Positions 6,143 through 64,000 of a stretch of DNA of 64,000 bases are shown here, piece after piece; the first letter of the stretch is position 1; the number at the start of each line of letters is the position of its first letter. The stretch is from the NCBI GenBank assembly GCA_002269645.1, contig NIVC01002200.1:62001-126000 (forward strand), in the 5' to 3' direction. This stretch comes from Macrostomum lignano. Its lineage: Eukaryota. The translations under genes and the position numbers were made by a program. The notes below the pieces were generated by a model that ran no database searches, was not told the DNA's origin, and saw only the letters and a list, made by a program, of their open reading frames with translations.

Positions 6143-9100
6143 ATGGTAAATTTCCCTCTCTTATCAGCACTTCACCCACACTGAGAATCTCCTCTTCACC
6201 CACACTGACCATCTCCTCTTCACCCACACTGAGAATCCCTCTTCACACACACTGAGCATCTCCTCTTCACCCACACTGAGAATCTCCTCTTCACCCACAC
6301 TGAGAATCTCCTCTTCACCCACACTGAGAATCCCCTCTTCACCCACACTGAGAATCTCCTCTTCACCCACACTGAGAATCCCCTCTTCACCCACACTGAG
6401 AATCTCCTCTTCACCCACACGGAGAATCTCCTCTTCACCCACCCACACTGAGAATCTCCTCTTCACCCACACTGAGCATCTCCTCTTCACCCACACTGAG
6501 AATCTCCTCTTCACCCACACTGAGAATCCCCTCTTCACCCACACTGAGAATCTCCTCTTCACCCACACTGAGAATCTCCTCTTCACCCACCCACACTGAG
6601 AATCCCCTCTTCACCCACACTGAGAATCTCCTCTTCACCCACACTGAGCATCTCCTCTTCACCCACACTGAGAATCCCTCTTCACCCACACTGAGAATCC
6701 CCTCTTCACCCACACTGAGCATCCCTCTTCACCCACACTGAGAATCTCCTCTTCACCCACACTGAGAATCTCCTCTTCACCCACCCACACTGAGAATCCC
6801 CTCTTCACCCACACTGAGAATCTCCTCTTCACCCACACTGAGAATCTCCTCTTCACCCACACTGAGAATCCCCTCTTCACCCACACTGAGAATCTCCTCT
6901 TCACCCACATTGAGCATCTCCTCTTCACCCACACTGAGAATCCCCTCTTCACCCACACTGAGAATCCCCTCTTCACCCACACTGAGAATCTCCTCTTCAC
7001 CCACACTGAGAATCTCCTCTTCACCCACCCACACTGAGAATCCCTCTTCACCCACACTGAGAATCCCCTCTTCACCCACACTGAGAATCTCCTCTTCACC
7101 CACCCACACTGAGCATCTCCTCTTCACCCACACTGAGAATCCCCTCTTCACCCACACTGGAAATCGTCTCTAACTTTACTCCAAACCTGCACCCGTCAGG
7201 CCAGAGTCGCCCTTCTGCTCATCGCGGCCCTGTTAGCCCAGGTATCAATCGCCTGCGGCGCGAACCACTCCGCCGCCTCACCACCAGGCCGACTGCCCTT
7301 ACTAATCGTCATATTTGATGGATTCCGTCACGACTACCTCGAACTGTACCGCTCTAGAGGCGTTCAACTGCCAAATTTTGAAGCGTTCGCTAGTCAAGGC
7401 GTTCGAGCTAAACGGGTGAAGAACGTGTACCCTACGGAGACTCTGCCCAATCATCAGAGCCTGGTTACCGGACTCTACTCTGAGAGTCACGGTTTCATTT
7501 TGAACACGTTTGCCGATCCCGAATTGCCAGGCAAATTGTTCTCTGTCTTTGACCAGTCCAGTCTGAATGATCCCGACTGGTCTGCTGGCTGGCCGGAGCC
7601 GTTGTGGGTGACCAATCAGAGGCAGGGCGGCCGATCCGCCGTGGTGCTGTACCCGAATTCCGACCTGCCTTACAACGGCTTTTTGCCCTTTGTACAGGTA
7701 GGAGTTGGTATTAGATAACCTAAAACCTTTATTGGCCAACAAAAAATCATTACACTGGGGAAAGTCAATCTAGTAGATCTAGACAAACCAATCTAGTAGA
7801 TCTAGACAGGCCAGTCTAGCAGATCTAGACAAACCAGTCTAGTAGATCTAGATAGGCCAGTCTAGCAGATCTAGACAGGCCAGTTTAATAGATCTAGACA
7901 AGCCAGTCTACGAGCGTAGTAGATCTAGACAAGCCAATCCTAGACAAGCCAGTCTAGTAGATCTAGACAGGCCAGTCTAGCAGATCTAGACAAGCAATAT
8001 ATGGATCTAGACAAGCTAATCTAGCAGATCTAGATAAACCAATCTAGAAGATCTAGACAAGCCAGTCTATCAGATTTTGACAAGCTAGTCTGGTAGACCT
8101 AGACAAGCCAGTCTGGTAGATCTAGACAAGCTAATCTAGTAGATCTAGACAAGCTAATCTATTTTATCTAGACAAGCTAATCTAGTATATCTAGACAAGT
8201 TAATCTAGTATATCTAGACAAGTTAATCTAGTATATCTAGACAAGCTAATCTAGTATATCTAGACAAGCTAATCTAGTATATCTAGACAGCTAATCTAGT
8301 ATATCTAGAAAAGTTAATCTAGTATATCTAGACAAGTTAATCTAGTATATCTAGACAAGTTAATCTAGTATATCTAGACAAGTTAATCTAGTATATCTAG
8401 ACAAGTTAATCTAGTAGATCTAGACAAGCTAATCTAGTAGATCTAGGCAAGCCAACCCACCCCATCCACTCAACCCAGGTGGACCAGTACGCCACCCTGA
8501 ACAATGGCAGCTCAGTCCGCTATCCGTACAGCCGGCGGGTGAGTCGCATGCTGCACTGGCTGGGCCAGCCGCAGCTGTACGGCATTAATCTGGGCCTGTT
8601 GTACTTTGACGAGCCGGATCACACTGCCCACCAGGCTGGCCACCTGAGCGATGATGTTGCCGCCAGGCTAATAGAATTGGACCAACAGCTTGGCCAATTG
8701 ATGACCGGCTTAAAAGAGCTGGGCCTAACTGATCGAATCAATATCGTATTGACAGCCGATCACGGCATGACGACGGGCAATAGTCGAATCTAATTGACTT
8801 GGATCAAATAGTTAATCCGGATTGGTACGTTAATTACTTAGCCGATAAGGCTAATATACACCTGGGCTTAATGCCGAAACCAGGCCGAACTCAAGATATT
8901 ATTAAAGCCGTCTCGGACGCTAAATTGCCCTACCTGCGGGCTAACCTGGCCTCTCACCTGCCCGATTGGATGCACTTTAACGGGTCGCGGCGGACACCGC
9001 CAGTGTATTTGTACGCGGACCCCCCATACGTCATCGTGGTTGGCGGCATACCGCCTGAGCATCCTGCTAAGTTTGGCGTGCACGGCTACGCTAACAATGA

Positions 9101-9527
9101 CACGGATATGTGGCCTCTGTGGCTGGCTAGGGGGCCGGCATTTCAGTCTGGCGGAGTTGAGATTGATCAGCTGATTGAGTCTGTGGATCTTTATCCCCTG
9201 GCTTGCCGACTATTGGGCATCCGAGCTAATCCGAATAATGGCTCCCTAGATCGGATTAGCGCAGTGCTGTCTTCGCCCGACTGGCTATTGGTTGAGCCGA
9301 TACCAACTGGCAATAAGTTTATCGACAAATTTCTCTCAGACCTGTTTGATTGCTGGTTTAATAAATACAGGCCATATACTCCTGCCTTTGTACTTGGTGC
9401 TCTGTGTCTCTTCGTTTTGGCGCTACTGGTTATTGTTAGCTATCTGGCTTGTCAGTGGCGTACGCGATGGCTGAAGCTGCGGATTGATGCTCAATTTTAC
9501 CGCGCTGCTATTAGACTTAACAAGTGA
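6143..9527 (+). CDS. Ectonucleotide pyrophosphatase/phosphodiesterase, ENPP4/5-like, left copy (exons 6143-6145 [ATG only], 7200-7697, 8479-9527) with a 1-nt frameshift at ~8784
   Basis: Signal peptide M|ARVALLLIAALLAQVS; motifs FDGFRHDY, PTETLPNH (catalytic Thr), DEPDHTAH, TADHGM, HGY; C-terminal TM helix. GT-AG phase-0 introns with branch-like ctctaac before 7199. One T is missing versus the right-arm copy (agtcga vs agttcga), giving TAA at 8791-8793. Confidence 0.88.
6168..7160. repeat. 24-nt minisatellite (cacccacactgagaatctcctctt)n in ENPP intron 1
   Basis: Direct reading; source of the spurious WVKRRFSV / SVGEEEIL ORFs. Confidence 0.95.
7770..8450. repeat. ~23-nt TCTAGA-containing minisatellite in ENPP intron 2
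   Basis: Unit tctagacaagctaatctagtaga with variants. Confidence 0.9.
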
Positions 9528-9618
9528 CTAATTCAGTGACTAATTGGCTGCTCTCCTATTAAACAGGAACAGGGAAAGAATTAGAGCGGGGTTGTTGCAG
9601 TCTGTTCTGTTGGTCTTT

Positions 9619-9767
9619 GAGGCGGGGTTGCTACAGTAGCAGTGCGTCCTGCTGCTGCTCTCTTATTGGCTAGGAGGGGAAGGAATTGAGGCGGGGTTGC
9701 TACAGTAGCAGTGTGTCCTGCTGCTGCTCTCTTATTGGCTAGGAGGGGAAGGAATTGAGGCGGGGTT
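9619..9767. repeat. 69-bp minisatellite, part left of the LINE insertion
   Basis: Units start at 9619, 9688 and 9757 (the third is interrupted); unit gaggcggggttgctacagtagcagtgtgtcctgctgctgctctcttattggctaggaggggaaggaatt. Confidence 0.9.
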
Positions 9768-9857
9768 ACTTACTTACTTACTACTGACGGGGGGCGCAGG
9801 CGCCGCGAATAGGCCGCGAGGCCCCTATCGCAACCCCAAGGTAAAAGAGCACAAGGA

Positions 9858-14691
<4,834 letters not shown>

Positions 14692-15434
14692 CTACATGTA
14701 GAGCGTAGAGAAAATCGGAAGCAAAAGAATTGACAGTCTAAGCAGGTTTCCAAAAAGCTGTTGCTTAAAACAGCAATTTTTTACTTTTACGAAAGTTTTT
14801 ATTCTTCGATATTTATCCAATTTTATTTTTAGTTAGCGGCAGTCCGCCGCTGCTTATTTTTGACTGAATCCTTTCTAGCAGGTCTTCTAATAGACAAACA
14901 TCAACTCCCGTATTCCGGTGAACGCAAAGCAATTTTTTGCTTTGATATTTTCTTCTTTTTTAGCCACAGCTCATAGCTATCGATATCTTCGATGCCTTTA
15001 ATTTTTATATTACTCGTACTTCAAGTACTCTTGTATAGATATTCCAGTAGTTAAACAAATCATTTGCGTTGTTTTCTGTTATAATATAATATACGGCTGT
15101 GTTCCAGGTGCCTGCGTGCTGAAAATATATAAGCATATCGTAGTTCAATTTTTTAATTAGCGCGTCATCACACAGAGTGTACACCGGCCCCGACTTTGTG
15201 CACTGGAGAATGTGCACAAGCAACTAGCCGAAGTTTCAAGTTATCCCTATAGTTAATGTACTTTTTCACCAAATCCTCGCACATGTACTATAGACCAGAA
15301 GAAGAGAAGAGTGGATAAGCAGAGAAAAGTCAAACCTTGAGCGGGTCGGATTGCTGTTGTGAAGTGCCGACCCAGGTACACTAGGCAGTTAAGGCATTCA
15401 AATCTGCATGTAACAGATTGCTCGGCTCTTACAG

Positions 15435-16616
15435 TCATCCTCGCCTCGTCGCCACGGCCGCCGCCGCCGTCGTCAAGAAGTCTCGTCGGCAAGCGCCGTC
15501 GTGGCCGCTGCCAGCCTCATCGACGACCCTTTGTCGGCATTCGCTGTCGACGCGTCGAATTCGCCGGCTGTCGATACCGCTAGCGGTCAGCTGGTCTGTC
15601 GTCGAGCTCGGAACCTCGACGTCTGCCTTCGGCCCTGCGCCTTCGACTTGGTCCGGTCGAACATGCGCGACATGTACCGGCGCAGCGCCTGGGGCTGGAG
15701 CGACTCGGCTAAACGCAGAGAGCTGTTCCACCCGAAGGCTTATTTCCTGTTGCTGTTGCCGCTTCCAGAAGAGGCCGCAGGCGTTGCTGACTGCGGCCAG
15801 CAGCAGATTGTCGGGTTGGCCAACTTTCGGTTCGATTTGGAGGATGGCAAACCTGTGCTATATTTGTATGAGATTCAGGTTAGTGCTATGAGATTCAGGC
15901 TAGTGCTATGAGATTCAGGTTAGTGCTATGAGATTCAGGCAAGTGCTATGAGATTCAGGCAAGTGCTATGAGATTCAGGCAAGTGCTATGAGATTCAGGC
16001 AAGTGCTATGAGATTCAGGCAAGTGCTATGAGATTCAGATTAGTGCTATAAGATTCAGGCTAGTGCTATGAGATTCAGGCAAGTGCTATGAGATTCAGGT
16101 AAGTGCTATGAGATTCAGGCTAGTGCTATGAGATTTAAGCAGTTGCTATGAGATTCAGGCAAGTGCTACGATGTCAAACTGTGTTCAGCATTGTTCTATG
16201 AGAGTCAGGCTTTATGCATTCAAGTTTATTTTTGTAACACCGAAATCGAACCCGGGTCTTTCGGCGTCAAATCAACTTCGCTACGTAGGCTTAGTGGGGC
16301 TTTTTAAGTTTCGTTGCAGCTATATTAAAAATAGCAAAAAACTCTATTTTTACTACTATATTGCTGGTAGGTAGCGCCGGACTGTCGCAGGCGCGGCATT
16401 GGCCAACGCCTCCTGGCCTGTCTTCGCCGGGTTGCCACCGGCGCGGGAATGTCCGGCGTGGTGGCCACAGTTTTCAAATTCAATGGCGTTTCGTTGGAAT
16501 TTTTTGCTGCAGCTGGCTTTGAGCAAGAGCAGCCCGCGGCTGCGGCAGATCCCCACTATGCGATTCTGTGGCTTCCCCTGACTCGAGAGACCAATAAAAC
16601 ACGGAAAATAACTTAA
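15435..16616 (+). CDS. NAA40: N-alpha-acetyltransferase 40 (NatD)-like, left copy (exons 15435-15878, 16371-16616; initiator codon not found in the genome)
   Basis: Motifs AASLIDDPLSAF, AFDLVRSNMRDMYRRSAWGWSDSAKRREL, ANFRFDLEDGKPVLYLYEIQ|VAPDCRRRGIGQRLL (GNAT acetyl-CoA motif), ATVFKFN..SLEFF..YAIL. Donor cag|gttagt at 15878, acceptor ggtag|gta at 16370, acceptor ttacag at 15434; all phase 0. Confidence 0.85.
15868..16170. repeat. 20-nt minisatellite derived from the NAA40 exon/intron junction (tatgagattcag|gYWagtgc)
   Basis: The unit contains the last 12 exon nt plus a donor-like hexamer; ~15 copies. Confidence 0.9.
16215..16292 (-). other. Degenerate tRNA-like / SINE-like element in the NAA40 intron
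   Basis: The right-arm homolog (~50899-50960, +) reads gcctacgTAGCGAAGTTGA..ccggGGTTCGATTCCggtgttacaaaaat: A-box-like and B-box motifs, but the anticodon arm is missing. Confidence 0.35.
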
Positions 16617-16832
16617 CTGCGTTAATGCGCAAAAAACGCTACTTATTTTTTTCTCTAAAGTCAGTAGGCATTCGCGAATATGAATCTCAAACTAAATTTT
16701 TTGCATTTATTAGCTGATGCATTGTAGTTATTGTATTCATGTAGTAGGCGAATAGATATCATTATTGATAAATTGTTGCTATATTAAACTTGTCATTGAA
16801 TTTAGCACTAATTTTTCAAACTGAAGATTATC

Positions 16833-16846
16833 GTTGCCATAGCAAC
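16833..16846. promoter_or_regulatory. RFX X-box-like palindrome GTTGCCATAGCAAC
   Basis: Matches the GTNRCC-N0-3-RGYAAC consensus; lies in the convergent 3' region between NAA40 and PDI; retained in the right arm (50343-50356). Confidence 0.4.
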
Positions 16847-16871
16847 GGCGAAGACAAAATCTCGACAAATT

Positions 16872-17096
16872 TCAAAGCTCCTCTTTCTTCTTTGCTGGCT
16901 CGGCGGCTTCTTCCACGGGCTTTTTAGCTGGCTCGCCTGCGGCGCGTTTCTCCAAGAAAGCCAGCAAGCCGCTGGTGGTCACAGGCGACTCGGTGTAGCT
17001 CTCTCCCTTCTTCCCGTCTGCGAACAGCAGCAGCGTTGGAAAGCCTTCGATGTTGTTGTCCACGCAGATGCCTGCGGGTGGGGTGGGGTGGCTTGG

Positions 17097-17181
<85 letters not shown>

Positions 17182-17218
17182 ATATATCTATCTACCTATC
17201 TATCTATCTATCTATCTA

Positions 17219-17254
<36 letters not shown>

Positions 17255-17259
17255 TCTAA

Positions 17260-17339
<80 letters not shown>

Positions 17340-17411
17340 AATCTATCTAATATATCTATCTATCTATCTATCTATCTAACTATCTATCTATCTATCTGTC
17401 TATCTATCTAA

Positions 17412-17483
<72 letters not shown>

Positions 17484-17487
17484 TTAT

Positions 17488-17521
<34 letters not shown>

Positions 17522-17534
17522 GTCTATCTATCTG

Positions 17535-17595
<61 letters not shown>

Positions 17596-17618
17596 TTTTT
17601 TATCTATCTATCTATCTG

Positions 17619-17654
<36 letters not shown>

Positions 17655-20600
17655 ACTATCTATCTATCTGTCTATCTAACTATCAATCTATCTATCCATC
17701 TATCTATCCATCATCTACCTACAGCCCCACAGCACCTTCATTAGCCTTGACATCGCAGTTGACTCCGACCAGCGCAGCTGAGGAGTCCTTGCCGAGCTTC
17801 TCGGCAGCCGCATCGAACTGCGGCTTGGCCCGCTGGCAGTGCGAGCACCAGGGCGCGTAGAACATCGCCAGCACCAGCCGGCTGGACTTGAGCACAGCTG
17901 AGAACTGGTCCTGACCTTCAATTAGCCTGGCATGCTTCATCATATCCTCCGGTTTCTCAGCTTCGCTTTCCTCATCTTCATCCTCGGATTTGCCAGCCTC
18001 GCCGCCGCGGCCCGAACCCATCGACTTCTCCTTGGGCGGATTGGCCAGGAAGTTCAGCAGCTGTTTGGTCTCGATCTCTTCGTCGAATTCCGCCCACGCT
18101 TCGCCCTTCTTCAGTAGGCGAATTGTTGGGTAGCCCTCCACTTTGGCATCTTCGCACAGCTCTGCGGTGGGAATGGCGTTCGGGCTCGCTGTCAGTGCAC
18201 TGATCTCCATGTGTGATTCCCCTGACCCACTGTCAGTGCACTGATTCCCTGTGTGATTCCCCTGACTCACTGTCAGTGCACCGATTCCCCTGTGTGATTC
18301 CCCTGACTCGCTGTCAGTGCACTGATTCCCTGTGTGATTCCACTAACTCGCTGTCAGTGCACCGATTCCCCTGTGTGATTCCCCTGACTCGCTGTCAGTG
18401 CACCGATTCCCCTGTGTGATTCCCCTGACTCGCTGTCAGTGCACTGATTCCCTGTGTGATTCCCCTGACTCTCTCTCTCTCTCTCAGTGTACTGATTCCC
18501 CTGTGTAATTCCCCTGACTGACTGTCAGTGCACTGATTCCCCTGTGTGATTCCCCGTACTCACAGAAACTCTCAGCCGATCATTTCCCTGACTCACAGAA
18601 ACTGTCAGTTAATCATTCCCCCGACTCACTATGATTGTCTTTGACGTCACAATTGACGGCAGCCATCAGAGCAGCTGCTGCCTCGTCAGCCTTGGACTGA
18701 GCGCCCGCCCGCAGAGTCGCGGCCGCCCGAGCGAACTTCGGCTTGGCGTCCTGGCAGTGCGGGCACCAGGGGGCGTAGTAGAACACCAGGGCCAGCTCTC
18801 GGCCTGACAGCGTCTGCGTGTAATTGGCCGCCGTCAGATAGGTCACACCCTCCATGCTGCGGGTGTGGATACCGGCTGGGTTAGTGTGTGCACCCACAGG
18901 GATAGTGTACACCCACAGGGATAGTGTACACCTCAGGGACAGTGTACACCCACAGGGATAGTGTACACCCACAGAGACAGTGTACACCCACAGGGATAGT
19001 GTACACCCACAGGGATAGTGTACACCTCAGGGACAGTGTCCACCCACAGGGATAGTGTACACCCACAGAGACAGTGTACACCCACAGGGACAGTGTACAC
19101 CCACAGGGATAGTGTACACCCACAGAGACAGTGTACACCCACAGGGATAGTGTACACCCACAGGGATAGTGTACACCCACAGGGATAGTGTACACCTCAG
19201 GGACAGTGTCCACCCACAGGGATAGTGTACACCCACAGGGACAGTGTACACCCACAGGGACAGTGTACACCCACAGGGACAGTGTACACCCACAGGGATA
19301 GTGTGCACACACAGGGATAGTGTACATCCACAGGGATAGTGTACACCCATGGGGATAGTGTACACCCACAGAGATTGTGTGCACCCACAATGACGGTGTA
19401 CACCCGCGGGATAGTGTACATGTACACCCACAGCTCACACAGAGTCGGGTTCGGCAGGCCCGTCCTCCTCGGCCGACGAGCTTGGCGGCCGCTTCTCCCC
19501 CTCCTTCGGCGGGTTCCGCATGAAGGTCAGCAGCGCTTTTTCCGTCGATTCTTCCTCGAAGTCCTGCACCTGCTTGCCGCGGCTGTACAGCCGAAATGTT
19601 GGATAGCCTTCGATCTTCTCCTTGTCGCACAAGTCTTTGTTTGGTTGGGGGTTTGGGTTCAGGACTAGTTTCTATTCTACTCTACTTTACTCTACTCTGC
19701 CAATCATCTCTACTCTACCAGTCTATCCCTGCTCTACTCTACACACCAGTCTATTCCTACTCTACTCTACTCTACCAGTCTATTCCTACTCTACTCTACT
19801 CTACCAGTCTATTCCTACTCTACTCTACTCTACCAGTTTATTCCTACTCTACTCTACTCTACCTGTCTATTCCTACTCTACTCTACTCTACCTGTCTATT
19901 CCTACTCTACTCTACACTACCCGTCTGTCCCTACTCTACTCTACTCTACTCTACCAGTCTATTCCTACTCTACTCTACTCTACTAGTCTATTCCTACTCT
20001 ACTCTACTCTACCAGTCTATTCCTACTCTACTCTACTCTACCAGTCTATTCCTACTCTACTCTACACTACCAATCTGTCCCTACTCTACTCTACACTACC
20101 AGTCTGTCCCTACTCTACTCTACTCTACCTGTCTATTCCTACTCTACTCTACACTACCAGTCTGTCCCTACTCTACTCTACTCTACCAGTCTATTCCTAC
20201 TCTACTCTACTCTACCAGTCTATTCCTACTCTACTCTACTCTACCAGTCTATTCCTACTCTACTCTACACTACCAATCTGTCCCTACTCTACTCTACACT
20301 ACCAGTCTGTCCCTACTCTACTCTACTCTACCTGTCTATTCCTACTCTACTCTACACTACCAGTCTGTCCCTACTCTACTCTACTCTACCAGTCTATTCC
20401 TACTCTACTCTACTCTACCAGTCTATTCCTACTCTACTCTACTCTACCAGTTTATTCCTACTCTACTCTACTCTACCTGTCTATTCCTACTCTACTCTAC
20501 TCTACCTGTCTATTCCTACTCTACTCTACACTACCCGTCTGTCCCTACTCTACTCTACTCTACTCTACCAGTCTATTCCTACTCTACTCTACTCTACTAG

Positions 20601-21970: not shown

Positions 21971-22196
21971 TTCTATGCTTTAAAATAACTTATCTTCTTT
22001 TGCCGAGAAATTTGCAGAGAGGAGTTCAAGGGTTGGGGTTGGAGCATTTTATGCCATTGCTTAAGAATTTAATCTTATAGGGGTCCGTCTATCTGGTCTG
22101 CGATTGGCTGCCTGAGATCGTGATCCCAGAGCTATGCTCAAAACTGCCTACCATAATCTTCATGTGTGCTTGTAAATTGTACACTCAAATCACTAG

Positions 22197-28621: not shown

Positions 28622-28649
28622 GGACAGACAGACAGACAGACAGACAGAA

Positions 28650-28748
<99 letters not shown>

Positions 28749-28749
28749 A

Positions 28750-28792
<43 letters not shown>

Positions 28793-28795
28793 GGC

Positions 28796-28850
<55 letters not shown>

Positions 28851-28855
28851 GAGAC

Positions 28856-28898
<43 letters not shown>

Positions 28899-46337: not shown

Positions 46338-50317
<3,980 letters not shown>

Positions 50318-51489: not shown

Positions 51490-52388
51490 TGTTGTAACCC
51501 GGGTCGGCTTGGGTGCCCAGTCCCGAGTACAATATATATTATATGTGATATAACAGGCGTTGTGACGCTCTGTCTGTACTTTTATGAATACGACGAGCAG
51601 GCGTGGCGACGCTCTGCGATAATAATTCGATCCCTCTGGTGTTGTGACACTCAGAGTTCACGCTGCGGCTCGAGGTGTGGTGACACTCTCGAGTGCTTCT
51701 ATTCTCTATACCGTAGGGCGTACGCAATATATATGGTAAACGGTACCGTACTACAGAAGCTATATGGTCTCCCGGCGTTATGACGCTCTGGCAAGAATTC
51801 GGCCTAGCAAGCTTCCCGGAAAGAAAGGACTCAAACAGCAGGCGGCTTACCAGTGGCCAGATGACTGTTCACCGTTTATTATTCGCAGGTCTCAAGCGCA
51901 GTTTCCGACTTCTTCTTAATTCTCCAAGACTCTTCTCAATTAGGCTATTGTGTTTCTTTTATCGAAGTAGCTAATGTTGCTGTTTCTTTTATCGAAGTAG
52001 CTAATGTTGCTGTTTCTTTTATCAGGTCTCGCGCTTGCACTCTCGGAGCACACCAAAACACAAAAAGCACGCCGGTGGCGGGCAAGAGCCAGAGTCGCAC
52101 CATAAATAGCACCCAAACCCTGGGGCAGACGGCCCCACCGGCTAAGCTCACCAAAACAAACCACGCCGGCCCAGCCAATCAAAACCCCGCCTAAGGGGGG
52201 AGGGGCTGCACCCGCGCCAAAGCTGGCCCGGCCGCAGCCAACCAGCCCTGAGCACGGGGCAGGGGCACGGCTGGGGAGGGGCACGCGCAAAGCCCGGCCG
52301 GGGCCAGACCCTGCCACGCCCGCCAACCCCCCCAACCAGCCCCAAAGTGCAACGCGCCCTGCCAACTGACAAGGGCGCATGCACTACA
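51490..52388 (-). repeat. 3' LTR
   Basis: No difference seen by eye from 57581-58479; sense-strand TATTTAT (52102-52108) and AATAAA (51875-51880); internal 30-nt tandem duplication at ~51951-52023. Confidence 0.95.
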
Positions 52389-52399
52389 CCCTCCCTCCT
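52389..52399 (-). other. Polypurine tract AGGAGGGAGGG
   Basis: Abuts the 3' LTR on the sense strand. Confidence 0.85.
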
Positions 52400-52654
52400 A
52401 CAAAAAAAACAGGGCGGAGCTCGAACCACGGCGACTGGGATTCCAAATTTTTTAAATAACAAAGCAAAAAAAATCAAAAACAACAAAAAAAATTGGGAAC
52501 AAACTAATGCAACAGGGAAAAGCAAAAAAAAGGTTGCCGCAAGAGAAATATGAAAAAGGTACTAGTATTCTGCACGCGAGTTCGTCAGGAGCAACCACGG
52601 GGCACGGAATAGGCCTTCAAAGCTGGCGGCACAGAAAACCATCGCAGGCGGCCG

Positions 52655-53110
52655 GCAGGACGAGCAGATGGCCGGGCGGGACGCGCAAGTTGCCGACAGG
52701 ACACGCAGGTGGCCAGCAGGAAGCGCAGATGGCCGGGCGGGAAGCGCAGGTTGCCGACAGGACGCGCAGATGGCCGGGCAGGAAGCGCAGGTTGCCGACA
52801 GGACGCGCAGATGGCCGACAGGGCACGCAGGTTGCCGACAGGACGCGCAGATGGCCGACAGGGCACGCAGGTGGCCGGCAAGACGCGAAGGCGGCCGGGC
52901 GAGGCGCGCAGATGGCCGGGCGGGAAGCGCACGTGGCCGCCGCAGAAGCCGGCAGGAAGCGCAGGTGGCCGCCGCAGAAGCCGGCAGGAAGCGCAGGTGG
53001 CCGCCGCAGAAGCCGGCAGGAAGCGCACGTGGCCGCCGCAGAAGCCGGCACGAAGCGCACGTGGCCGCCGCAGAAGCCGGCAGGAAGCGCACGTGGCCGC
53101 CGCACAGCTG
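52655..53110. repeat. GC-rich tandem array (~20-nt and 32-nt units) in the Gypsy 3' region
   Basis: Cores gcagatggcc / gcaggtggcc / gcacgtggcc. Confidence 0.85.
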
Positions 53111-53141
53111 CTGAGCCATTCCCCCAGGAAGCTTGACCCCA

Positions 53142-54917
53142 CTAGCATGCAAATAAACCCATACAGTACGAGCGTAACCACATACATACAAGTAAGCAGA
53201 AAATACAGTATGAATCGGAACTGGGCACCCTAGCGAACCCGAAGTCCAGGGACGCCAGATTGCCGGCTGAGAATCGTTCAAATTCGACTGCATTTAGTCC
53301 TTCTGGATGCTGCGCACATGCCGGGCATGTCTCCGCTCCGAAATGTCTCCGTACTGGCTTCCTCGACATTGCGTCCGCGTTGCCATGCGATCGACCTGGT
53401 CTGTGAACGATGCGGTACTGAAATGGAGCCAACTTCTCCAACCAGCGAGCAACCTGTCCCTCGGCGTCACTGAAGTTTTTTAACCATTGCAGGCTGCTGT
53501 GGTCCGTTCGCAGACAGAACGCTTTTCCAAGCAGATAGTATCTGAACTTCATGATGAAAGTCACAACCGCTAGTAGTTCTAAACGAGTCGTACAATAGTT
53601 GCGTTCGGCTTGATTTAGTGTCTTGGACCCATAGGCGATCACTCGTTCTGCTCCATCTGGCTGGACTTGAGAAAGTACCGCTCCTATGCCCATCTTCGAA
53701 CTGCCATCAGTATCGAGGATAAACTCTCCGGCATCCGGGGAGAAATCCGGATGAGCCATAACCTCTGAACTTGTCATTCGTTCCTTCAATGTTTCGAACG
53801 CCAGCTGCTGTTCCGTTTTCCATTCAAACTTTGCGTCTTTTGTTGTCAATCGAGTTAGAGGCGCTGCTATTGCGGCGAAATCTTTAATAAACTTTCTGTA
53901 ATAGCCACACAGGCCCAAGAATGAATGCAGCTCCGTCGAGGATCGCGGTGTTGGCCAGTTCTTCACTTCTTGAACTTTCTCCTCATCGGTACTGATGCCA
54001 GCAGCCGACAGCGTGTGACCGAGAAATTTCACTTGCTTTTGCAAAAAGTGACACTTCTGGGGCTTCAGGCACAAATTTGCTTGCCGCAACTTGCTGAATA
54101 TTTCCTCCAGTCTTCTCAGGTGTTCATCCACGTCGGTTGACCAAACCAGTAGATCGTCGATGTAGACGAGACAGGTTTTCCACATCTGCTTGTCCAGAAC
54201 GGCTGCCATCAACCTGGTGAATGTTGCTGGGCTGTTCACTAAGCCGAACGGCATAACCTTCCATCGAAATTGTCCGCGATGCGGCACTGCAAACGCCGTC
54301 TTGTCCTGATCCTGAGGTCTCACCCCTACTTGCCAAAACCCGCTGTGAAGGTCCATTGTCGAGAAGATCTTGGCGCCGTGTACTGCCTCCAGCGCATCAT
54401 CGACCCTCGGCATCGGCACTGCATCCTTGACGGTGACCTCATTCAACTTCCGATAATCGACGCACATCCTCATTTCCCCTGATTTCTTCTTTACACACAC
54501 CAAAGGAAAGCACCATGGTGACTGTGCTTCTTCGATCTGCCCCTTTTCCAGCAACTCGTTGACTTGACGATCTACTTCTGGCTGTAAGTGGGGAGGCAGA
54601 CGACGCGGTGGGATCTTGATTGGGCGCGCATTCTCGGTGTTAATTTCATGCTCCACCACGGTAGTTAACTTGCTTGAAGTCTGCTTGGTCGTGAACACAT
54701 CGCTGTAACTCCGGACAAGGATTCTAAATTCTTCGTCTTCTTTCGTCGACAGTCCACAGTCGCCGTACGAGTTTGGTAGCAAGTCTGCTTCCGAAGGGCT
54801 GTTGCTGCCTTGGACCTTCGGCTCTTCCTGTGGATCGTCTCCTGACTCTACGGCTAAGAGCTTGATGGTGTTCAACGGTTCGGTGGATTCTAGGGGCAGA
54901 ACCACCCGAGCGTACAA
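53142..54917 (-). CDS. pol: Gypsy Pol: reverse transcriptase and RNase H
   Basis: Motifs RMCVDYRKLN, FSTMDLHSGFWQV, MPFGLVNSPATF, YIDDLL, VKFLGH, FLGLCGYYRKFI, LDTDGS..GIGAVLSQ, NYCTTRLELLAV, RWLEKL..HRPG..NADAMSR. Confidence 0.95.
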   Translation of the reverse strand: MYARVVLPLESTEPLNTIKLLAVESGDDPQEEPKVQGSNSPSEADLLPNSYGDCGLSTKEDEEFRILVRSYSDVFTTKQTSSKLTTVVEHEINTENARPIKIPPRRLPPHLQPEVDRQVNELLEKGQIEEAQSPWCFPLVCVKKKSGEMRMCVDYRKLNEVTVKDAVPMPRVDDALEAVHGAKIFSTMDLHSGFWQVGVRPQDQDKTAFAVPHRGQFRWKVMPFGLVNSPATFTRLMAAVLDKQMWKTCLVYIDDLLVWSTDVDEHLRRLEEIFSKLRQANLCLKPQKCHFLQKQVKFLGHTLSAAGISTDEEKVQEVKNWPTPRSSTELHSFLGLCGYYRKFIKDFAAIAAPLTRLTTKDAKFEWKTEQQLAFETLKERMTSSEVMAHPDFSPDAGEFILDTDGSSKMGIGAVLSQVQPDGAERVIAYGSKTLNQAERNYCTTRLELLAVVTFIMKFRYYLLGKAFCLRTDHSSLQWLKNFSDAEGQVARWLEKLAPFQYRIVHRPGRSHGNADAMSRKPVRRHFGAETCPACAQHPEGLNAVEFERFSAGNLASLDFGFARVPSSDSYCIFCLLVCMWLRSYCMGLFAC

Positions 54918-54993
54918 CCTTGGCGAATTCTGACTGGCTCCTCCGTGATATTGATGAGTCGAGTCGGCAGACGGCTGCCGCTATTTGGGATCA

Positions 54994-56505
54994 CTAAGGC
55001 CTTAGCAAGCCAGCGGCCAGCTGCCAAATCGTTCGCCCGAGATTCTCAGTTAGGCCGACACACCCTCTGTTCCGTCGTCCTTTGCTCTCCAGCCTTGCTG
55101 ACAGAACTGCTTGATGACCTGGCGGTATTGTGCTGGACCTTGTCGCCAAAATTCTGCAAACGATCGGGCGCTCAGCTTGCCATCGGAACGGGATTGCAGT
55201 GTCCTGCACTGAAAAGACAGCTGTCTTGTAGTCGATGACGCAACTGTTGTCCCTGCAGAAGTCGGATCCCAATACCAGTTGGTACTTCACTCCGCTGACT
55301 ACCAAGGCTGGAGTATCTATTACTTTATCAGCGATTGACAGTCGCAACAGGACTGTTCTCTCGATTTCGATCGGGCTGCCGTTTGCTAAGCTAACGTAGC
55401 CTTCAGCACCGGCCAAATCTCTGACGCTCTGTTTCGGCATACTTTGGTAAGCTTCCCGTGAGATAATGGTGCAGGAAGCTCCCGAGTCCACTAGCGCGTT
55501 CACCCTCCGCCCTGCGATTGAGGCCGTAACATATATCGACGCAGGATTGATTTGAATTGACTGAGGTGCGTTGACGGTGATTGGGCGCTGCGACTGTGCA
55601 AAACCGGCTAGTTGATGGTGAGGTGCAGTACCGGACGCTGGAGGCTGATGAGGCACTGTAACGGACACTGGATGCTGATGAGACTCAGTACCGGACACTG
55701 TAGGCTGATGAGGCGCAGTACCGGACACTGGAGGCTGATGAGGCACTGTACCGGACACTGGATGCTGATGAGACACAGTACCGGACACTGGATGCTGATG
55801 AGGCACTGTACCGGACACTGGAGGCTGATGAGGCGCAGTACCGGACACTGGATGCTGATGAGGCGCAGTACCGGACGCTGGAGGCTGATGAGGCGCAGTA
55901 CCGGACACTGGATGCTGATGAGGCGCAGTACCGGACACTGAATGCTGATGAGGCGCAGTACCGGACACTGGAGGCTGATGAGGCACTGTACCGGACACTG
56001 GATGCTGATGAGACACAGTACCGGACACTGGATGCTGATGAGACTCAGTACCGGACACTGTAGGCTGATGAGGCGCAGTACCGGACACTGGAGGCTGATG
56101 AGGCACTGTACCGGACACTGGATGCTGATGAGACACAGTACCGGACACTGGAGGCTGATGAGACGCTGTACCGGACGCTGGAGGCTGATGAGGCGCAGTA
56201 CCGGACACTGAATGCTGATGAGGCGCAGTACCGGACACTGGATGCTGATGAGGCGCAGTACCGGACACTGGAGGCTGATGAGATGAAGTACCGGACACTG
56301 GATGCTGATGAGGCGCAGTACCGGACACTGGAGGCTGATGAGACGCAGTACCGGGCGTTTGATGATGATGAGATGAGATGACGACTTGTTCGGAGGCTGA
56401 CGAATTGCAGGGGCTCACTTGCCTCCAGCTGGTGGGCCCCTCTAGCCTTTTCCCGGCTTTGGGCACTGGAATGAGAGATGGCCTATCTCCCCGCAGTTGT
56501 AGCAC
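54994..56505 (-). CDS. Gypsy Pol N-terminus: 24x10-aa repeat linker plus aspartic protease (entered by a -1 frameshift)
   Basis: ALVDSGASCTIIS retropepsin motif and LVLGSDF; two apparent 1-nt losses (~55030, ~54905) separate it from the RT frame. Confidence 0.88.
   Translation of the reverse strand: MLQLRGDRPSLIPVPKAGKRLEGPTSWRQVSPCNSSASEQVVISSHHHQTPGTASHQPPVSGTAPHQHPVSGTSSHQPPVSGTAPHQHPVSGTAPHQHSVSGTAPHQPPASGTASHQPPVSGTVSHQHPVSGTVPHQPPVSGTAPHQPTVSGTESHQHPVSGTVSHQHPVSGTVPHQPPVSGTAPHQHSVSGTAPHQHPVSGTAPHQPPASGTAPHQHPVSGTAPHQPPVSGTVPHQHPVSGTVSHQHPVSGTVPHQPPVSGTAPHQPTVSGTESHQHPVSVTVPHQPPASGTAPHHQLAGFAQSQRPITVNAPQSIQINPASIYVTASIAGRRVNALVDSGASCTIISREAYQSMPKQSVRDLAGAEGYVSLANGSPIEIERTVLLRLSIADKVIDTPALVVSGVKYQLVLGSDFCRDNSCVIDYKTAVFSVQDTAIPFRWQAERPIVCRILATRSSTIPPGHQAVLSARLESKGRRNRGCVGLTENLGRTIWQLAAGLLRP
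55619..56352. repeat. 30-nt coding tandem repeat (24 units; T-A/V-P/S-H-Q-H/P-P-V-S-G)
   Basis: Perfect 30-nt period without indels. Confidence 0.95.
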
Positions 56506-57335
56506 TTGACACCGCTACGCTGCTTCGAGCTGGACGGAGCCGCCTGCTTGGATTGTTGCTTGTCTTGAAGACCGGGTTCGGGCGGCTCCTGCTGGCCCTG
56601 CTGGATCTGCTCCATCCGTCGGATCTTTTCTTCTATTTCCTTTACTTTTTGACGCAGTTGCCGTAGCTCCTCGTCTTTGCCGGTGTCACCTGTCGACGTT
56701 TCGGTGGCAAAGGCATTCAGCCCAGCCCTGGGTCTGGCTTTGGACTGGGTCGAAGACGCCTTCTGGGCTGCTTCAAGTTGTCTTACTGTTCGAATGGCAT
56801 CGGTGAGGTTGGCCGGCTGCTGCAGGTACAGTCTTTCTCGGACAGTGTCGGTTACTCGAACGCCTTTTAGAAATCTGTCTTTCGCCAGCTCTGTCCTGGT
56901 GTCGGCATCCGCGGTGGGGAAGGCATTGCGCACCAACTCCAGCAGCTCGTCCCCGTAGGTCTCCACAGACTCCTTGTCTAGCTGATCTCGATTCGATAAT
57001 TCAAAACGGTAGTCCTGGGCTGTTCTGTTCATGGTGAACCGCGCCAGCAGTGCATCCGTGAATTCCCCGTACTCGATGTCGTCTGCCAAGTCCAGCTTAT
57101 CAACGGCAGCGTAGGCTGTTGTGAGGTCGAGTAGGCCGATCAGGTGCGGCCGCCTGGCTTCTTCTTCTATACCGACAGCCTCGCAGTACTCGTTGAAACT
57201 CTGCAGCCATAGGCTGAAATTCATCGTTGGTATGTACTTGGGCGGCTTCGAGAGTCGTGGCGCTGCTCGGTCGGCGTTGGCTCTGAGGCGCGCAGCCAGC
57301 GCATCGATCAGTTGGTCCATAGCTTGATCACCCAT
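56442..57335 (-). CDS. gag: Gypsy Gag with CCHC zinc knuckle
   Basis: First ATG at 57335; capsid-like helical region and CYNCGEIGHLSFQC; TAG at 56444-56442. Confidence 0.92.
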   Translation of the reverse strand: MGDQAMDQLIDALAARLRANADRAAPRLSKPPKYIPTMNFSLWLQSFNEYCEAVGIEEEARRPHLIGLLDLTTAYAAVDKLDLADDIEYGEFTDALLARFTMNRTAQDYRFELSNRDQLDKESVETYGDELLELVRNAFPTADADTRTELAKDRFLKGVRVTDTVRERLYLQQPANLTDAIRTVRQLEAAQKASSTQSKARPRAGLNAFATETSTGDTGKDEELRQLRQKVKEIEEKIRRMEQIQQGQQEPPEPGLQDKQQSKQAAPSSSKQRSGVKCYNCGEIGHLSFQCPKPGKG

Positions 57336-57559
57336 GGCCGAAGTCACTGAATACCGTTGCTACTCTTTACTCTGAGGTGGTGATAGCTATCAATCTCTGA
57401 TAACCAATCAGTTGTCTGTCACCGTGATCAATGTCTTTTGCGGTAGGGCAATAGCCGCAAGCGATAAGCAACAGTCGTTTTAATAAGAAAAAACGCTCAC
57501 AATATGACAGCAATTTTCATAGAAAGCAACTGAGCCGACTTTCAATCTTTGGGGACAGG

Positions 57560-57577
57560 GTCCCTGTTCGGGCGCCA
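57560..57577 (-). other. Primer-binding site TGGCGCCCGAACAGGGAC (tRNA-Lys UUU, 'Lys3')
   Basis: 18-nt perfect complement of the 3' end of tRNA-Lys3, 3 nt downstream of the 5' LTR. Confidence 0.92.
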
Positions 57578-57580
57578 ATT

Positions 57581-58479
57581 TGTTGTAACCCGGGTCGGCT
57601 TGGGTGCCCAGTCCCGAGTACAATATATATTATATGTGATATAACAGGCGTTGTGACGCTCTGTCTGTACTTTTATGAATACGACGAGCAGGCGTGGCGA
57701 CGCTCTGCGATAATAATTCGATCCCTCTGGTGTTGTGACACTCAGAGTTCACGCTGCGGCTCGAGGTGTGGTGACACTCTCGAGTGCTTCTATTCTCTAT
57801 ACCGTAGGGCGTACGCAATATATATGGTAAACGGTACCGTACTACAGAAGCTATATGGTCTCCCGGCGTTATGACGCTCTGGCAAGAATTCGGCCTAGCA
57901 AGCTTCCCGGAAAGAAAGGACTCAAACAGCAGGCGGCTTACCAGTGGCCAGATGACTGTTCACCGTTTATTATTCGCAGGTCTCAAGCGCAGTTTCCGAC
58001 TTCTTCTTAATTCTCCAAGACTCTTCTCAATTAGGCTATTGTGTTTCTTTTATCGAAGTAGCTAATGTTGCTGTTTCTTTTATCGAAGTAGCTAATGTTG
58101 CTGTTTCTTTTATCAGGTCTCGCGCTTGCACTCTCGGAGCACACCAAAACACAAAAAGCACGCCGGTGGCGGGCAAGAGCCAGAGTCGCACCATAAATAG
58201 CACCCAAACCCTGGGGCAGACGGCCCCACCGGCTAAGCTCACCAAAACAAACCACGCCGGCCCAGCCAATCAAAACCCCGCCTAAGGGGGGAGGGGCTGC
58301 ACCCGCGCCAAAGCTGGCCCGGCCGCAGCCAACCAGCCCTGAGCACGGGGCAGGGGCACGGCTGGGGAGGGGCACGCGCAAAGCCCGGCCGGGGCCAGAC
58401 CCTGCCACGCCCGCCAACCCCCCCAACCAGCCCCAAAGTGCAACGCGCCCTGCCAACTGACAAGGGCGCATGCACTACA
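57581..58479 (-). repeat. 5' LTR
   Basis: 899 bp, TGTAGTG...ACAACA on the sense strand. Confidence 0.95.
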
Positions 58480-60048: not shown

Positions 60049-62013
60049 TCACTTGTTAAGTCTAATAGCAGCGCGGTAAAATTGAGCATCAATCCGCAGC
60101 TTCAGCCATCGCGTACGCCACTGACAAGCCAGATAGCTAACAATAACCAGTAGCGCCAAAACGAAGAGACACAGAGCACCAAGTACAAAGGCAGGAGTAT
60201 ATGGCCTGTATTTATTAAACCAGCAATCAAACAGGTCTGAGAGAAATTTGTCGATAAACTTATTGCCAGTTGGTATCGGCTCAACCAGTAGCCAGTCGGG
60301 CGAAGACAGCACTGCGCTAATCCGATCTAGGGAGCCATTATTCGGATTAGCTCGGATGCCCAATAGTCGGCAAGCCAGGGGATAAAGATCCACAGACTCA
60401 ATCAGCTGATCAATCTCAACTCCGCCAGACTGAAATGCCGGCCCCCTAGCCAGCCACAGAGGCCACATATCCGTGTCATTGTTAGCGTAGCCGTGCACGC
60501 CAAACGTAGCAGGATGCTCAGGCGGTATGCCGCCAACAACGATGACGTATGGGGGGTCCGCGTACAAATACACTGGCGGTGTCCGCCGCGACCCGTTAAA
60601 GTGCATCCAATCGGGCAGGTGAGAGGCCAGGTTAGCCCGCAGGTAGGGCAATTTAGCGTCCGAGACGGCTTTGATAATATCTTGAGCTCGGCCTGGTTTC
60701 GGCATTAAGCCCAGGTGTATATTAGCCTTATCGGCTAAGTAATTAACGTACCAATCCGGATTAACTATTTGATCCAAGTCAATTAGATTCGAACTATTGC
60801 CCGTCGTCATGCCGTGATCGGCTGTCAATACGATATTGATTCGATCAGTTAGGCCCAGCTCTTTCAAGCCGGTCATCAATTGGCCAAGCTGTTGGTCCAA
60901 TTCTATTAGCCTGGCGGCAACATCATCGCTCAGGTGGCCAGCCTGGTGGGCAGTGTGATCCGGCTCGTCAAAGTACAACAGGCCCAGATTAATGCCGTAC
61001 AGCTGCGGCTGGCCCAGCCAGTGCAGCATGCGACTCACCCGCCGGCTGTACGGATAGCGGACTGAGCTGCCGTTGTTCAGGGTGGCGTACTGGTCCACCT
61101 GGGTTGAGTGGATGGGGTGGGTTGGCTTGCCTAGATATACTAGATTAGCTTGTCTAGATATACTAGATTAGCTTGTCTAGATCTACTAGTTTAGCTTGTC
61201 TAGATCTGCTATACTGGCTTGTCTAGATCTGCTATACTGGCTTGTCTAGATCTGCTAGACTGGCTTGTCTAGATCTGCTAGACTGGCCTGTCTAGATCTG
61301 CTAGACTGACCTGTCTAGATCTGCTAGACTGACCTGTCTAGATCTACTAGATTGGTATGTCTAGATCTGCTAGACTGACCTGTCTAGATCTACTAGATTG
61401 GTATGTCTAGATTTGCTAGACTGGCTTGTCTAGATCTGCTAGATTGACTTTCCCCAGTGTAATGATTTTTTTGTTGGCCAATAAAGGTTTTAGGTTATCT
61501 AATACCAACTCCTACCTGTACAAAGGGCAAAAAGCCGTTGTAAGGCAGGTCGGAATTCGGGTACAGCACCACGGCGGATCGGCCGCCCTGCCTCTGATTG
61601 GTCACCCACAACGGCTCCGGCCAGCCAGCAGACCAGTCGGGATCATTCAGACTGGACTGGTCAAAGACAGAGAACAATTTGCCTGGCAATTCGGGATCGG
61701 CAAACGTGTTCAAAATGAAACCGTGACTCTCAGAGTAGAGTCCGGTAACCAGGCTCTGATGATTGGGCAGAGTCTCCGTAGGGTACACGTTCTTCACCCG
61801 TTTAGCTCGAACGCCTTGACTAGCGAACGCTTCAAAATTTGGCAGTTGAACGCCTCTAGAGCGGTACAGTTCGAGGTAGTCGTGACGGAATCCATCGAAT
61901 ATGACGATTAGTAAGGGCAGTCGGCCGGGTGGTGAACCGGCGGAGTGGTTCGCGCCGCAGGCGATTGACACCTGGGCTAACAGGGCCGCGATGAGCAGAA
62001 GGGCGACTCTGGC
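60049..62013 (-). CDS. ENPP4/5-like phosphodiesterase, right copy, intact frame (exons 62013-61516, 61098-60049; ATG exon beyond the window end)
   Basis: Continuous 349-aa last exon (GNSSNLIDLD); same splice sites as the left copy. Confidence 0.9.
61130..61450. repeat. TCTAGA-containing minisatellite (shorter mirror of 7770-8450)
   Basis: Intron length 417 bp versus 781 bp in the left arm. Confidence 0.88.
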
Positions 62014-62054
62014 CTGACGGGTGCAGGTTTGGAGTAAAGTTAGAGACGATTTCC

Positions 62055-64000
62055 AGTGTGGGTGAAGAGGGGATGCTCAGTGTGGGTGGAGGGGATTCTC
62101 AGTGTGGGTGAAGAGGGGATGCTCAGTGTGGGTGAAGAGGGGATTCCCAGTGTGGGTGAAGAGGGGATGCTCAGTGTGGGTGAAGAGGGGACTCAGTGTG
62201 GGTGAAGAGGAGATTCTCAGTGTGGGTGAAGAGGAGATTCTCAGTGTGGGTGAAGAGGAGATTCTCAGTGTGGGTGAAGAGGGGATGCTCAGTGTGGGTG
62301 AAGAGGAGATTCTCAGTGTGGGTGAAGAGGGGATTCTCAGTGTGGGTGAAGAGGGGATTCTCAGTGTGGGTGAGAGGAGATTCTCAGTGTGGGTGAAGAG
62401 GGGATTCTCAGTGTGGGTGAAGAGGAGATTCTCAGTGTGGGTGAAGAGGAGATTCTCAGTGTGGGTGAAGAGGGATTCTCAGTGTGGGTGAAGAGGAGAT
62501 TCTCAGTGTGGGTGAAGAGGAGATTCTCAGTGTGGGTGAAGAGGAGATTCTCAGTGTGGGTGAAGAGGAGATTCTCAGTGTGGGTGAAGAGGGGATTCTC
62601 AGTGTGGGTGAAGAGGGGACTCAGTGTGGGTGAAGAGGAGATTCTCAGTGTGGGTGAAGAGGGGATTCTCAGTGTGGGTGAAGAGGAGATTCTCAGTGTG
62701 GGTGAAGAGGGGATCCCAGTGTGGGTGAAGAGGGGATTCTCAGTGTGGGTGAAGAGGAGATTCTCAGTGTGGGTGAAGAGGAGATTCTCAGTGTGGGTGA
62801 AGAGGGGATTCTCAGTGTGGGTGAAGAGGGGATTCTCAGTGTGGGTGAAGAGGGGATGCTCAGTGTGGGTGAAGAGGGGATTCTCAGTGTGGGTGAAGAG
62901 GAGATTCTCAGTGTGGGTGAAGAGGAGATTCTCAGTGTGGGTGAAGAGGGGATTCTCAGTGTGGGTGAAGAGGGGATTCTCAGTGTGGGTGAAGAGGAGA
63001 TTCTCAGTGTGGGTGAAGAGGGGATTCTCAGTGTGGGTGAAGAGGAGATTCTCAGTGTGGGTGAGAGGGGATTCTCAGTGTGGGTGAAGATGGGATTCTC
63101 AGTGTGGGTGAAGAGGAGATTCTCAGTGTGGGTGAAGAGGGGATTCTCAGTGTGGGTGAGAGGGGATTCTCAGTGTGGGTGAAGAGGGGATGCTCAGTGT
63201 GGGTGAAGAGGGGATCCTCAGTGTGGGTGAAGAGGGGATTCTCAGTGTGGGTGAAGAGGGGATTCTCAGTGTGGGTGAAGAGGAGATTCTCAGTGTGGGT
63301 GAAGAGGGGATTCTCAGTGTGGGTGAAGAGGGGATTCTCAGTGTGGGTGAAGAGGGGATGCTCAGTGTGGGTGAAGAGGGGATTCTCAGTGTGGGTGAAG
63401 AGGAGATTCTCAGTGTGGGTGAAGAGGAGATTCTCAGTGTGGGTGAAGAGGGGATTCTCAGTGTGGGTGAAGAGGGGATTCTCAGTGTGGGTGAAGAGGA
63501 GATTCTCAGTGTGGGTGAAGAGGGGATTCTCAGTGTGGGTGAAGAGGAGATTCTCAGTGTGGGTGAGAGGGGATTCTCAGTGTGGGTGAAGATGGGATTC
63601 TCAGTGTGGGTGAAGAGGAGATTCTCAGTGTGGGTGAAGAGGGGATTCTCAGTGTGGGTGAGAGGGGATTCTCAGTGTGGGTGAAGAGGGGATGCTCAGT
63701 GTGGGTGAAGAGGGGATCCTCAGTGTGGGTGAAGAGGGGATTCTCAGTGTGGGTGAAGAGGGGATTCTCAGTGTGGGTGAAGAGGAGATTCTCAGTGTGG
63801 GTGAAGAGGGGATTCTCAGTGTGGGTGAAGAGGGGATTCTCAGTGTGGGTGAGAGGAGATTCTCAGTGTGGGTGAAGAGGGGATTCTCAGTGTGGGTGAA
63901 GAGGAGATTCTCAGTGTGGGTGAAGAGGAGATTCTCAGTGTGGGTGAAGAGGGGATTCTCAGTGTGGGTGAAGAGGAGATTCTCAGTGTGGGTGAAGAGG
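62055..64000. repeat. 24-nt minisatellite (mirror of 6168-7160, at least twice as long)
   Basis: Direct reading; runs off the window end. Confidence 0.95.

Follow-up and report, generated by a model that had tools for sequence, protein, structure and literature searches.

The DNA described here, a window of 64,000 nucleotides from Macrostomum lignano, corresponds at 100% identity to positions 62001-126000 of NIVC01002200.1, a scaffold of 194,215 bp in assembly Mlig_3_7 (GCA_002269645.1), and has the appearance of a large palindrome. A block of genes in its left part (6170-30170) returns as the reverse complement in its right part (37953-64000), with a centre (30171-37283) and a scaffolding gap of 669 N (37284-37952; record 99284-99952) lying between the two arms. 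Is this mirrored arrangement a property of the genome or of its assembly? Coordinates below refer to the window unless they are given as positions in the record.

The left arm, as seen in the window, carries five features that follow one another toward the centre: an ENPP gene (7137-9524, plus strand; Pfam Phosphodiest), an NAA40-like gene of the GNAT type (15414-16613, plus strand; Pfam Acetyltransf_1), a PDI gene (16872-21970, minus strand; PAA60045.1), an open reading frame (ORF) of 585 aa encoding a coiled-coil protein (23816-25570, minus strand), and the last exon of a Gln-rich gene (29687-30367, minus strand), which spans the arm boundary at 30170. The GNAT gene is called NAA40-like by the motif KRRELF...FRFDLEDGKPVLYLYE, which we take to be characteristic of NAA40. 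The centre contains, on the minus strand, the exons that lie farther upstream in this Gln-rich, osa-like gene (32432-31179, 34645-33776 and 35678-35181); that at 33776-34645 shares 97% identity with M. lignano UniProt entries under the names DEK_C/osa. A 39-bp AT-rich minisatellite follows toward the gap. On the far side of the gap the right arm repeats the gene order in reverse: the coiled-coil ORF (~42571-44329, plus strand) with a 1-bp deletion at 43058, PDI (46338-50317, plus strand; PAA60047.1), the NAA40-like gene split by a Gypsy element (51490-58479), and ENPP (~60049-62050, minus strand). Both sets of the four genes that the first-pass annotation had counted twice (ENPP, NAA40, PDI and the coiled-coil gene) are found in the mirrored arms.

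Extent and content of the mirrored block

Comparison of 1-37283 with 37953-64000 by blastn gave 543 high-scoring segment pairs (HSPs), all 543 in minus orientation and none direct. After many off-register minisatellite matches were discarded, a single colinear inverted chain was obtained, with ~16 kb aligned at ~97% identity. From the outside inward, its segments pair 6170-8069 with 63018-61141 (93.7% identity), 8133-9770 with 61445-59804 (95.4%), 14275-15743 with 59957-58479 (96.2%), 15869-20618 with 51319-46652 (96.1%), and 22190-30170 with 45953-37953 (98.9%). The exclusively inverted orientation of all 543 HSPs and the single chain of this length and identity rule out a chance or low-complexity match, and they bear out the first-pass claim that 6170-30170 reappears reverse-complemented at 37953-64000.

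The mirror does not stop at the edges of the window. The outermost part of the left copy (1-6169, plus strand) contains minisatellites and XPA exons (3304-3894 and ~5497-5880, plus strand; Pfam XPA_N/XPA_C) with 98% identity to an M. lignano UniProt entry, and it has its mirror partner immediately beyond the end of the window. A 24-bp minisatellite has at least 81 copies in the right arm against 40 in the left, so that the right arm leaves the window while still inside the array, and the partner of 1-6169 falls outside because of this greater length. The second XPA gene, PAA60049.1, is found at record 126707-128163 (window-equivalent 64707-66163, minus strand), and the mirror continues through it and at least 9 kb farther outward, up to the edge of the compared DNA, with 97.9% identity between the two arms over 7.8 kb upstream of XPA. 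The outer limit at 6170 is thus set by the window edge and not by biology, and each arm is at least 36 kb long. The earlier description of a four-gene block of 24-26 kb was right about an inverted duplication in the sequence and understated its size, since the block extends over XPA and measures 36 kb or more.

The PDI gene illustrates how close the copies can be. When rebuilt from five GT-AG exons, it encodes a protein of 438 aa that has a signal peptide, carries three CxxC sites of the thioredoxin type and ends in KEEL. This protein matches exactly PAA60045.1 and PAA60047.1 on NIVC01002200.1 as well as PAA92716.1 on another contig, NIVC01000041.1. The coding sequences (CDS) of the left and right arms are identical at 1317 of 1317 nucleotides. 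The PDI introns contain long minisatellites of varying copy number; a 29-bp unit, for example, is present in 67 copies on the left and 31 on the right. Minisatellite density is extreme throughout: Tandem Repeats Finder (TRF) returned 55 rows at a score of at least 200 for window positions 1-64000, with units of 16-69 bp and arrays of up to 2 kb that lie mainly in introns and intergenic DNA.

Each arm also has a transposable element (TE) of its own. The left copy alone carries a long interspersed nuclear element (LINE; 9771-14141, minus strand; Pfam RVT_1 and Exo_endo_phos_2) with an intact 848-aa ORF for endonuclease and reverse transcriptase and a (TACT)n-type tail. Its insertion site is a 69-bp minisatellite that lies downstream of ENPP, and it was found neither in the right arm nor in the third copy of the locus, on NIVC01000041.1. 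The right copy alone carries a Gypsy retrotransposon (51490-58479, minus strand; Pfam gag, protease, reverse transcriptase (RT) and RNase H) bounded by two long terminal repeats (LTRs) of 899 bp each (51490-52388 and 57581-58479) that are 100% identical. Its gag, protease and RT/RNase H ORFs are apparently open, its target-site duplication is 4-5 bp, (A)TAAG, and the left arm retains a clean empty site at ~15743. This element, too, was not found in the third copy. The insertion, which is predicted to be very young, interrupts a coding exon of the NAA40-like gene and is predicted to knock out one of the three copies of that gene.

Two further gene models in the arms deserve comment. The 585-aa coiled-coil ORF (23816-25570, minus strand) is without annotation in the assembly, and its sole detectable relative is an M. 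lignano hypothetical protein, 36% identical, on NIVC01002287.1; it appears to represent a lineage-restricted gene family. An annotated gene of 307 aa at 28400-29323 (minus strand) is an open frame through a (GACA)n microsatellite. Its counterpart on contig NIVC01003884.1 encodes 285 aa (2659-3516 of the stretch NIVC01003884.1:17148-42170), and the gene model is probably spurious.

Contig ends at the gap

The gap is the single run of N in the window, and its size of 669, in line with the first-pass annotation, is a read-pair estimate made by the scaffolder SSPACE. It lies near the scaffold midpoint (record 97108) and directly between the centre and the right arm, which begins at the first base past it. 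On the left flank, the left contig ends within the non-coding 39-bp AT-rich minisatellite (35840-37283; 37 copies by TRF). The right flank is CAG-rich coding sequence on the opposite strand, 197 bp into the final exon of the Gln-rich gene. Neither homology nor a reading frame spans 37284-37952, and the ORFs listed across the gap (e.g. 37279-38283) result from translating N. Each of the two contig ends here lies in or beside repeats.

The inner end of the right contig is unusual in its quality. Homology between the arms runs to the first base past the gap. Within that homology the right arm is 100% identical to the left over the stretch matching 29300-29910, then shows three 1-bp deletions, and is then garbled in its last 40 bp by 1-2 bp indels and substitutions, which together with the 1-bp deletions are the only differences in the last 260 bp. 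This error-rich end (37953-38212, plus strand) lies inside the last Gln-rich exon, in agreement with the first reading of a right arm that starts mid-exon with clustered indels.

Two other contigs, which are described below, helped to assign these differences. In what follows L denotes the left contig and arm, R the right contig and arm, F the contig NIVC01003884.1 and T the contig NIVC01000041.1. A four-way alignment places 1-bp indels unique to R at 6587, 5086, 1562, 259, 249 and 218 bp from its contig end; an extra 1-bp deletion, 5 bp from the end, is visible in the alignment of L with R only. At the indels checked, L, F and T agree against R, and most fall in short homopolymer runs. One such R-unique error, at 43058, accounts for the apparent frameshift in the right coiled-coil ORF. 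These homopolymer errors become denser toward the contig end. Because homology reaches the last base and the 1-bp indels are unique to R, the pattern marks a contig end that dangles at low coverage and not a biological breakpoint.

Further copies and their shifting kinship

Contig F (NIVC01003884.1:17148-42170) spans the window-equivalent of 31945 to 15512 and then runs into a gap of 4240 N followed by unrelated sequence. It matches the window in one HSP of 15.5 kb (31011 to 15512) with 35 mismatches, and its minisatellites have the lengths seen in the left arm; to judge by this match, F represents the left haplotype a second time, as a redundant contig. Its PDI is a variant of 436 aa (PAA49414.1). 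The possibility that F is the missing continuation of R was rejected, since it has the minisatellite lengths and variants of the left arm. The end of F at its own gap is probably a further case of redundancy or faulty scaffolding at this locus. Contig T carries a PDI gene at 10001-14481 of the compared NIVC01000041.1 stretch, continues colinearly across 30170, and has an annotated, intact gene of 1063 aa with the same stop codon as the Gln-rich gene of the window.

Three contig copies (L, F and T) thus run from arm to centre across 30170 without interruption, and only R stops there; no alternative junction at this position occurs in L, F or T. The centre had been described as single-copy, which holds within the window, where 30171-37283 has no match in the right arm. 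It does not hold beyond the window, as further copies of the arm-proximal part of the centre are present on NIVC01003884.1 (at least ~1.8 kb) and NIVC01000041.1 (at least ~0.8 kb). An orphan contig that would continue the right arm was not recovered: a search with the centre exon against 1.84 billion representatives returned only UniProt (ML2) entries without a contig.

Gene counts agree on the number of copies. The 90% identity cluster of XPA has exactly three GenBank members, two on NIVC01002200.1 and one on NIVC01000041.1, and the older ML2 assembly also has three XPA genes. PDI is present on L, R and T, with F as the redundant addition; a 56-aa "cluster member" of PDI on a 48-kb Logan contig proved to be a mis-clustered bacterial protein. 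There are three distinct haplotypes (L/F, R and T), which matches the published number of M. lignano subgenome copies, S, L1 and L2.

How are the three related? They are colinear from at least 9 kb upstream of XPA to the Gln-rich gene, with substitutions at 0.1-2.3% and indels that consist of TEs and minisatellites. Outside tandem repeats, L and R differ by 47 substitutions in 9793 bp (0.5%), and most of the apparent divergence in the raw identities of 93-96% is caused by variation in minisatellite length. Non-repeat substitutions in the five chain segments amount, from the outside inward, to 0.85%, 0.61%, 2.3%, 0.26% and 0.10%. In the inner tract (22190-30170) L and R are separated by 5 substitutions in 5048 non-repeat bp, two of which lie in the last 40 bp, so that outside that end three substitutions and the 1-bp indels are all that separates the arms beyond tandem repeats; in this tract L, F and R share the same site pattern and T is 0.9% different. 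The kinship changes farther out. Around the 5' region of NAA40, R is 99.7% identical to T and L is 96.2% identical to R. In the segments covering the 3' part of XPA and ENPP, 20 sites unite R and T against L and a single site unites L and R against T. In the ~8 kb upstream of XPA the preference turns again, with 9 sites uniting L and R against T and 2 showing other patterns. L and R are therefore closest to each other only in the inner tract and in one upstream segment, and the arms are not mutual closest relatives throughout. This shift of the closest pair along the region indicates that recombination or gene conversion among the subgenome copies probably took place in the past. A one-off inverted duplication is disfavoured, because it would make the arms closest relatives over their whole length; the mosaic pattern suggests instead three recombining colinear haplotypes, not a duplicated pair and an outgroup.

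Origin of the inverted adjacency

The contigs of Mlig_3_7 were built with Canu 1.4 from PacBio reads and then polished with Pilon, and scaffolding was done with SSPACE v3 using Illumina and 454 paired-end reads and mate-pair libraries of 6-8 kb, which reduced 5980 contigs to 5270 scaffolds (PMC5730564). REAPR called 63.95% of the bases error-free, and the authors themselves stated a redundancy of 180-312 Mb (PMC5730564). About 85% of the genome of the DV1 line is present in three paralogous copies (Zadesenets et al. 2023, PMC10733133): the small chromosomes carry the subgenome S, and the large chromosome exists in two variants that carry L1 and L2. The divergence of these copies in single-nucleotide polymorphisms (SNPs) is 1.9-2.4% and their indel differences are very large (PMC10733133). 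The same study found that 93% of read pairs have multiple mapping places and that scaffolds chimeric for S and L make up 36% of the length of Mlig_3_7; a per-scaffold table of subgenomes is not among its supplementary material (PMC10733133).

Against this background, the palindrome is best read as a false inverted duplication, a chimera that scaffolding made from two of the three homeologous copies, and we put the probability of this reading at roughly 80%. The first-pass annotation had left the choice between a true palindrome and two haplotypes or homeologues joined head-to-head. The second alternative is favoured because an SSPACE gap sits at a dangling contig end, the other copies are colinear and the arms are not consistently closest; the true palindrome is not supported. 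The published hallmarks of false duplications include an assembly gap that separates the two copies within a scaffold (Ko et al. 2022, PMC9516828), as the 669-N gap does here. The arms are distinct variants and not one sequence twice, as seen from the 47 substitutions, the private LINE and Gypsy elements and the minisatellite copy numbers, and the number of distinct copies, three, equals that of the published subgenomes.

In such a chimera, the left contig (record 1-99283, assuming that it contains no other gap) and the right contig (record 99953-194215) would be separate Canu contigs of PacBio reads that represent two of the three colinear copies of XPA, ENPP, NAA40, PDI, the coiled-coil gene and the Gln-rich gene. 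Moving inward, the two haplotypes would become indistinguishable from ~22190 on. The right contig would run ~8 kb, or about one read length, into this shared tract, with read support thinning, and stop mid-exon, while the left contig would continue through the centre and stop in the 39-bp minisatellite. SSPACE would then have joined the two ends head-to-head and written its estimate of the gap between them, which would give the scaffold its palindrome-like form. We infer that the SSPACE link itself is spurious.

Several points weigh against this interpretation. An SSPACE join and an estimate of 669 bp need several concordant pairs, so that some data did link the two ends. Plain colinear pairs of haplotypes would not yield a head-to-head orientation, and the chimera leaves the cause of the link unexplained. 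False heterotype duplications are usually tandem overlaps and not inverted. Finally, the divergence of the arms outside repeats, at 0.5%, is below that published for the subgenomes, 1.9-2.4%.

Could the junction be real and belong to another haplotype? The centre may be inverted in the haplotype of the right arm, one breakpoint being close to 30170 and the other within or beyond the 39-bp minisatellite. A collapsed centre would then have been entered from the left haplotype and left along the inversion junction of the right one, with the two arms on different chromosomes. On this model the read pairs behind the head-to-head join and its small gap would be genuine, and a right contig that stops close to a possible end of homology would also be accounted for. 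Inversions have been reported between the large and small chromosomes of M. lignano and proposed to hold L1/L2 and S apart (PMC10733133). The model is unlikely nonetheless, both in the inversion that it postulates and in the path of assembly through a collapsed centre: it has to break the last exon of a gene whose other copies are intact, its reciprocal junction is on no contig, and the tapering quality of the R end argues against extension by reads from a haplotype-specific junction.

A true large palindrome, or inverted segmental duplication, would place both arms on one chromosome, with a spacer of ~7.8 kb, a gene-converted inner tract of 8 kb, and a right boundary within the 669-bp gap. 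The finite gap estimate with which the scaffolder joined the ends speaks for it, as do the inner 8 kb of the arms, which are ~99.9% identical in the manner of gene-converting palindromes, and the inversions reported between large and small chromosomes of M. lignano. If it were true, gene conversion would homogenise the 8 kb beside the spacer of a giant palindrome, and the palindrome itself would be left over from, or still be produced by, the fusions and rearrangements from which the large chromosome MLI1 arose. However, the sequence is discontinuous at the junction, and the right "boundary" is a contig end with indels of the read-error type at which the end of homology is not visible. The arms are not consistently closest, with R grouping with T by 20 to 1 in the ENPP region, and both their divergence and their TE insertions resemble ordinary differences between subgenomes. 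If a single haplotype carried the palindrome, both assemblies would lack one of the three XPA-ENPP haplotypes that are expected. Moreover, at 130x PacBio coverage Canu should have crossed a real junction within a gap of only ~669 bp. It is accordingly very unlikely that the arms form a true inverted duplication, and just as hard to credit a real giant palindrome of homeologous blocks of at least 36 kb (possibly ~92 kb) on a single chromosome. The TE insertions and SNPs that distinguish the arms rule out a hairpin artefact, such as would arise if a missed SMRTbell adapter or a chimera of multiple displacement amplification had let a single molecule be read a second time.

If the scaffold is a chimera of two homeologous copies, the consequences are mainly for curation and downstream use, and little biological weight attaches to the mirrored arrangement. 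NIVC01002200.1 should probably be split at record 99284-99952, and the pairs of XPA, ENPP, NAA40, PDI and coiled-coil genes on it are not to be taken as a local duplication or a palindrome. The locus is also a worked example of three M. lignano copies, with mosaic kinship, an identical PDI CDS and young private TEs, including one that interrupts a single copy of NAA40; this bears on the design of knock-outs in this model animal.

The arrangement invites comparison with the human Y palindromes P1-P8, whose arms are reportedly ~99.97% identical throughout and mutual closest relatives, and which are said to be backed by continuous clone or long-read sequence. Like them, the window has inverted arms of tens of kb, gene pairs, a unique spacer and a near-identical stretch beside that spacer. 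Unlike in their case, identity drops outward, the arms have private TEs, R is partly closer to T than to its supposed partner, and the junction is an unsequenced scaffold gap.

A second comparison is with false heterotype duplications, the target of purge_haplotigs and purge_dups, in which uncollapsed contigs of a haplotype or homeologue come to lie beside their partner with a gap between them (PMC9516828). In both, diverged copies of one locus lie on a single scaffold with a gap between them, the copies differ in SNPs, minisatellite lengths and TEs, one of them stops at a contig end in the middle of a gene, and genes appear to have been gained, here as pairs of ENPP, NAA40, PDI, the coiled-coil gene and XPA. 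The usual case is a tandem overlap in a heterozygous diploid, whereas here the copies are inverted and the genome is that of a neopolyploid with three subgenomes. The S/L1/L2 organisation of M. lignano provides the same features, with three colinear copies, low SNP divergence and large indels of TEs and tandem repeats (PMC10733133). Most of the four-copy blocks of Mlig_3_7 have merely threefold depth (PMC10733133), and the present locus resembles them in its fourth, redundant contig F and in a scaffold that mixes copies. The chimerism published for this assembly differs in that it concerns the S and L classes, and head-to-head joins of paralogous blocks were not described (PMC10733133). The inverted adjacency is most probably not biological: it belongs to a familiar class of artefact, and the assembly in question has already been described as chimeric and redundant.

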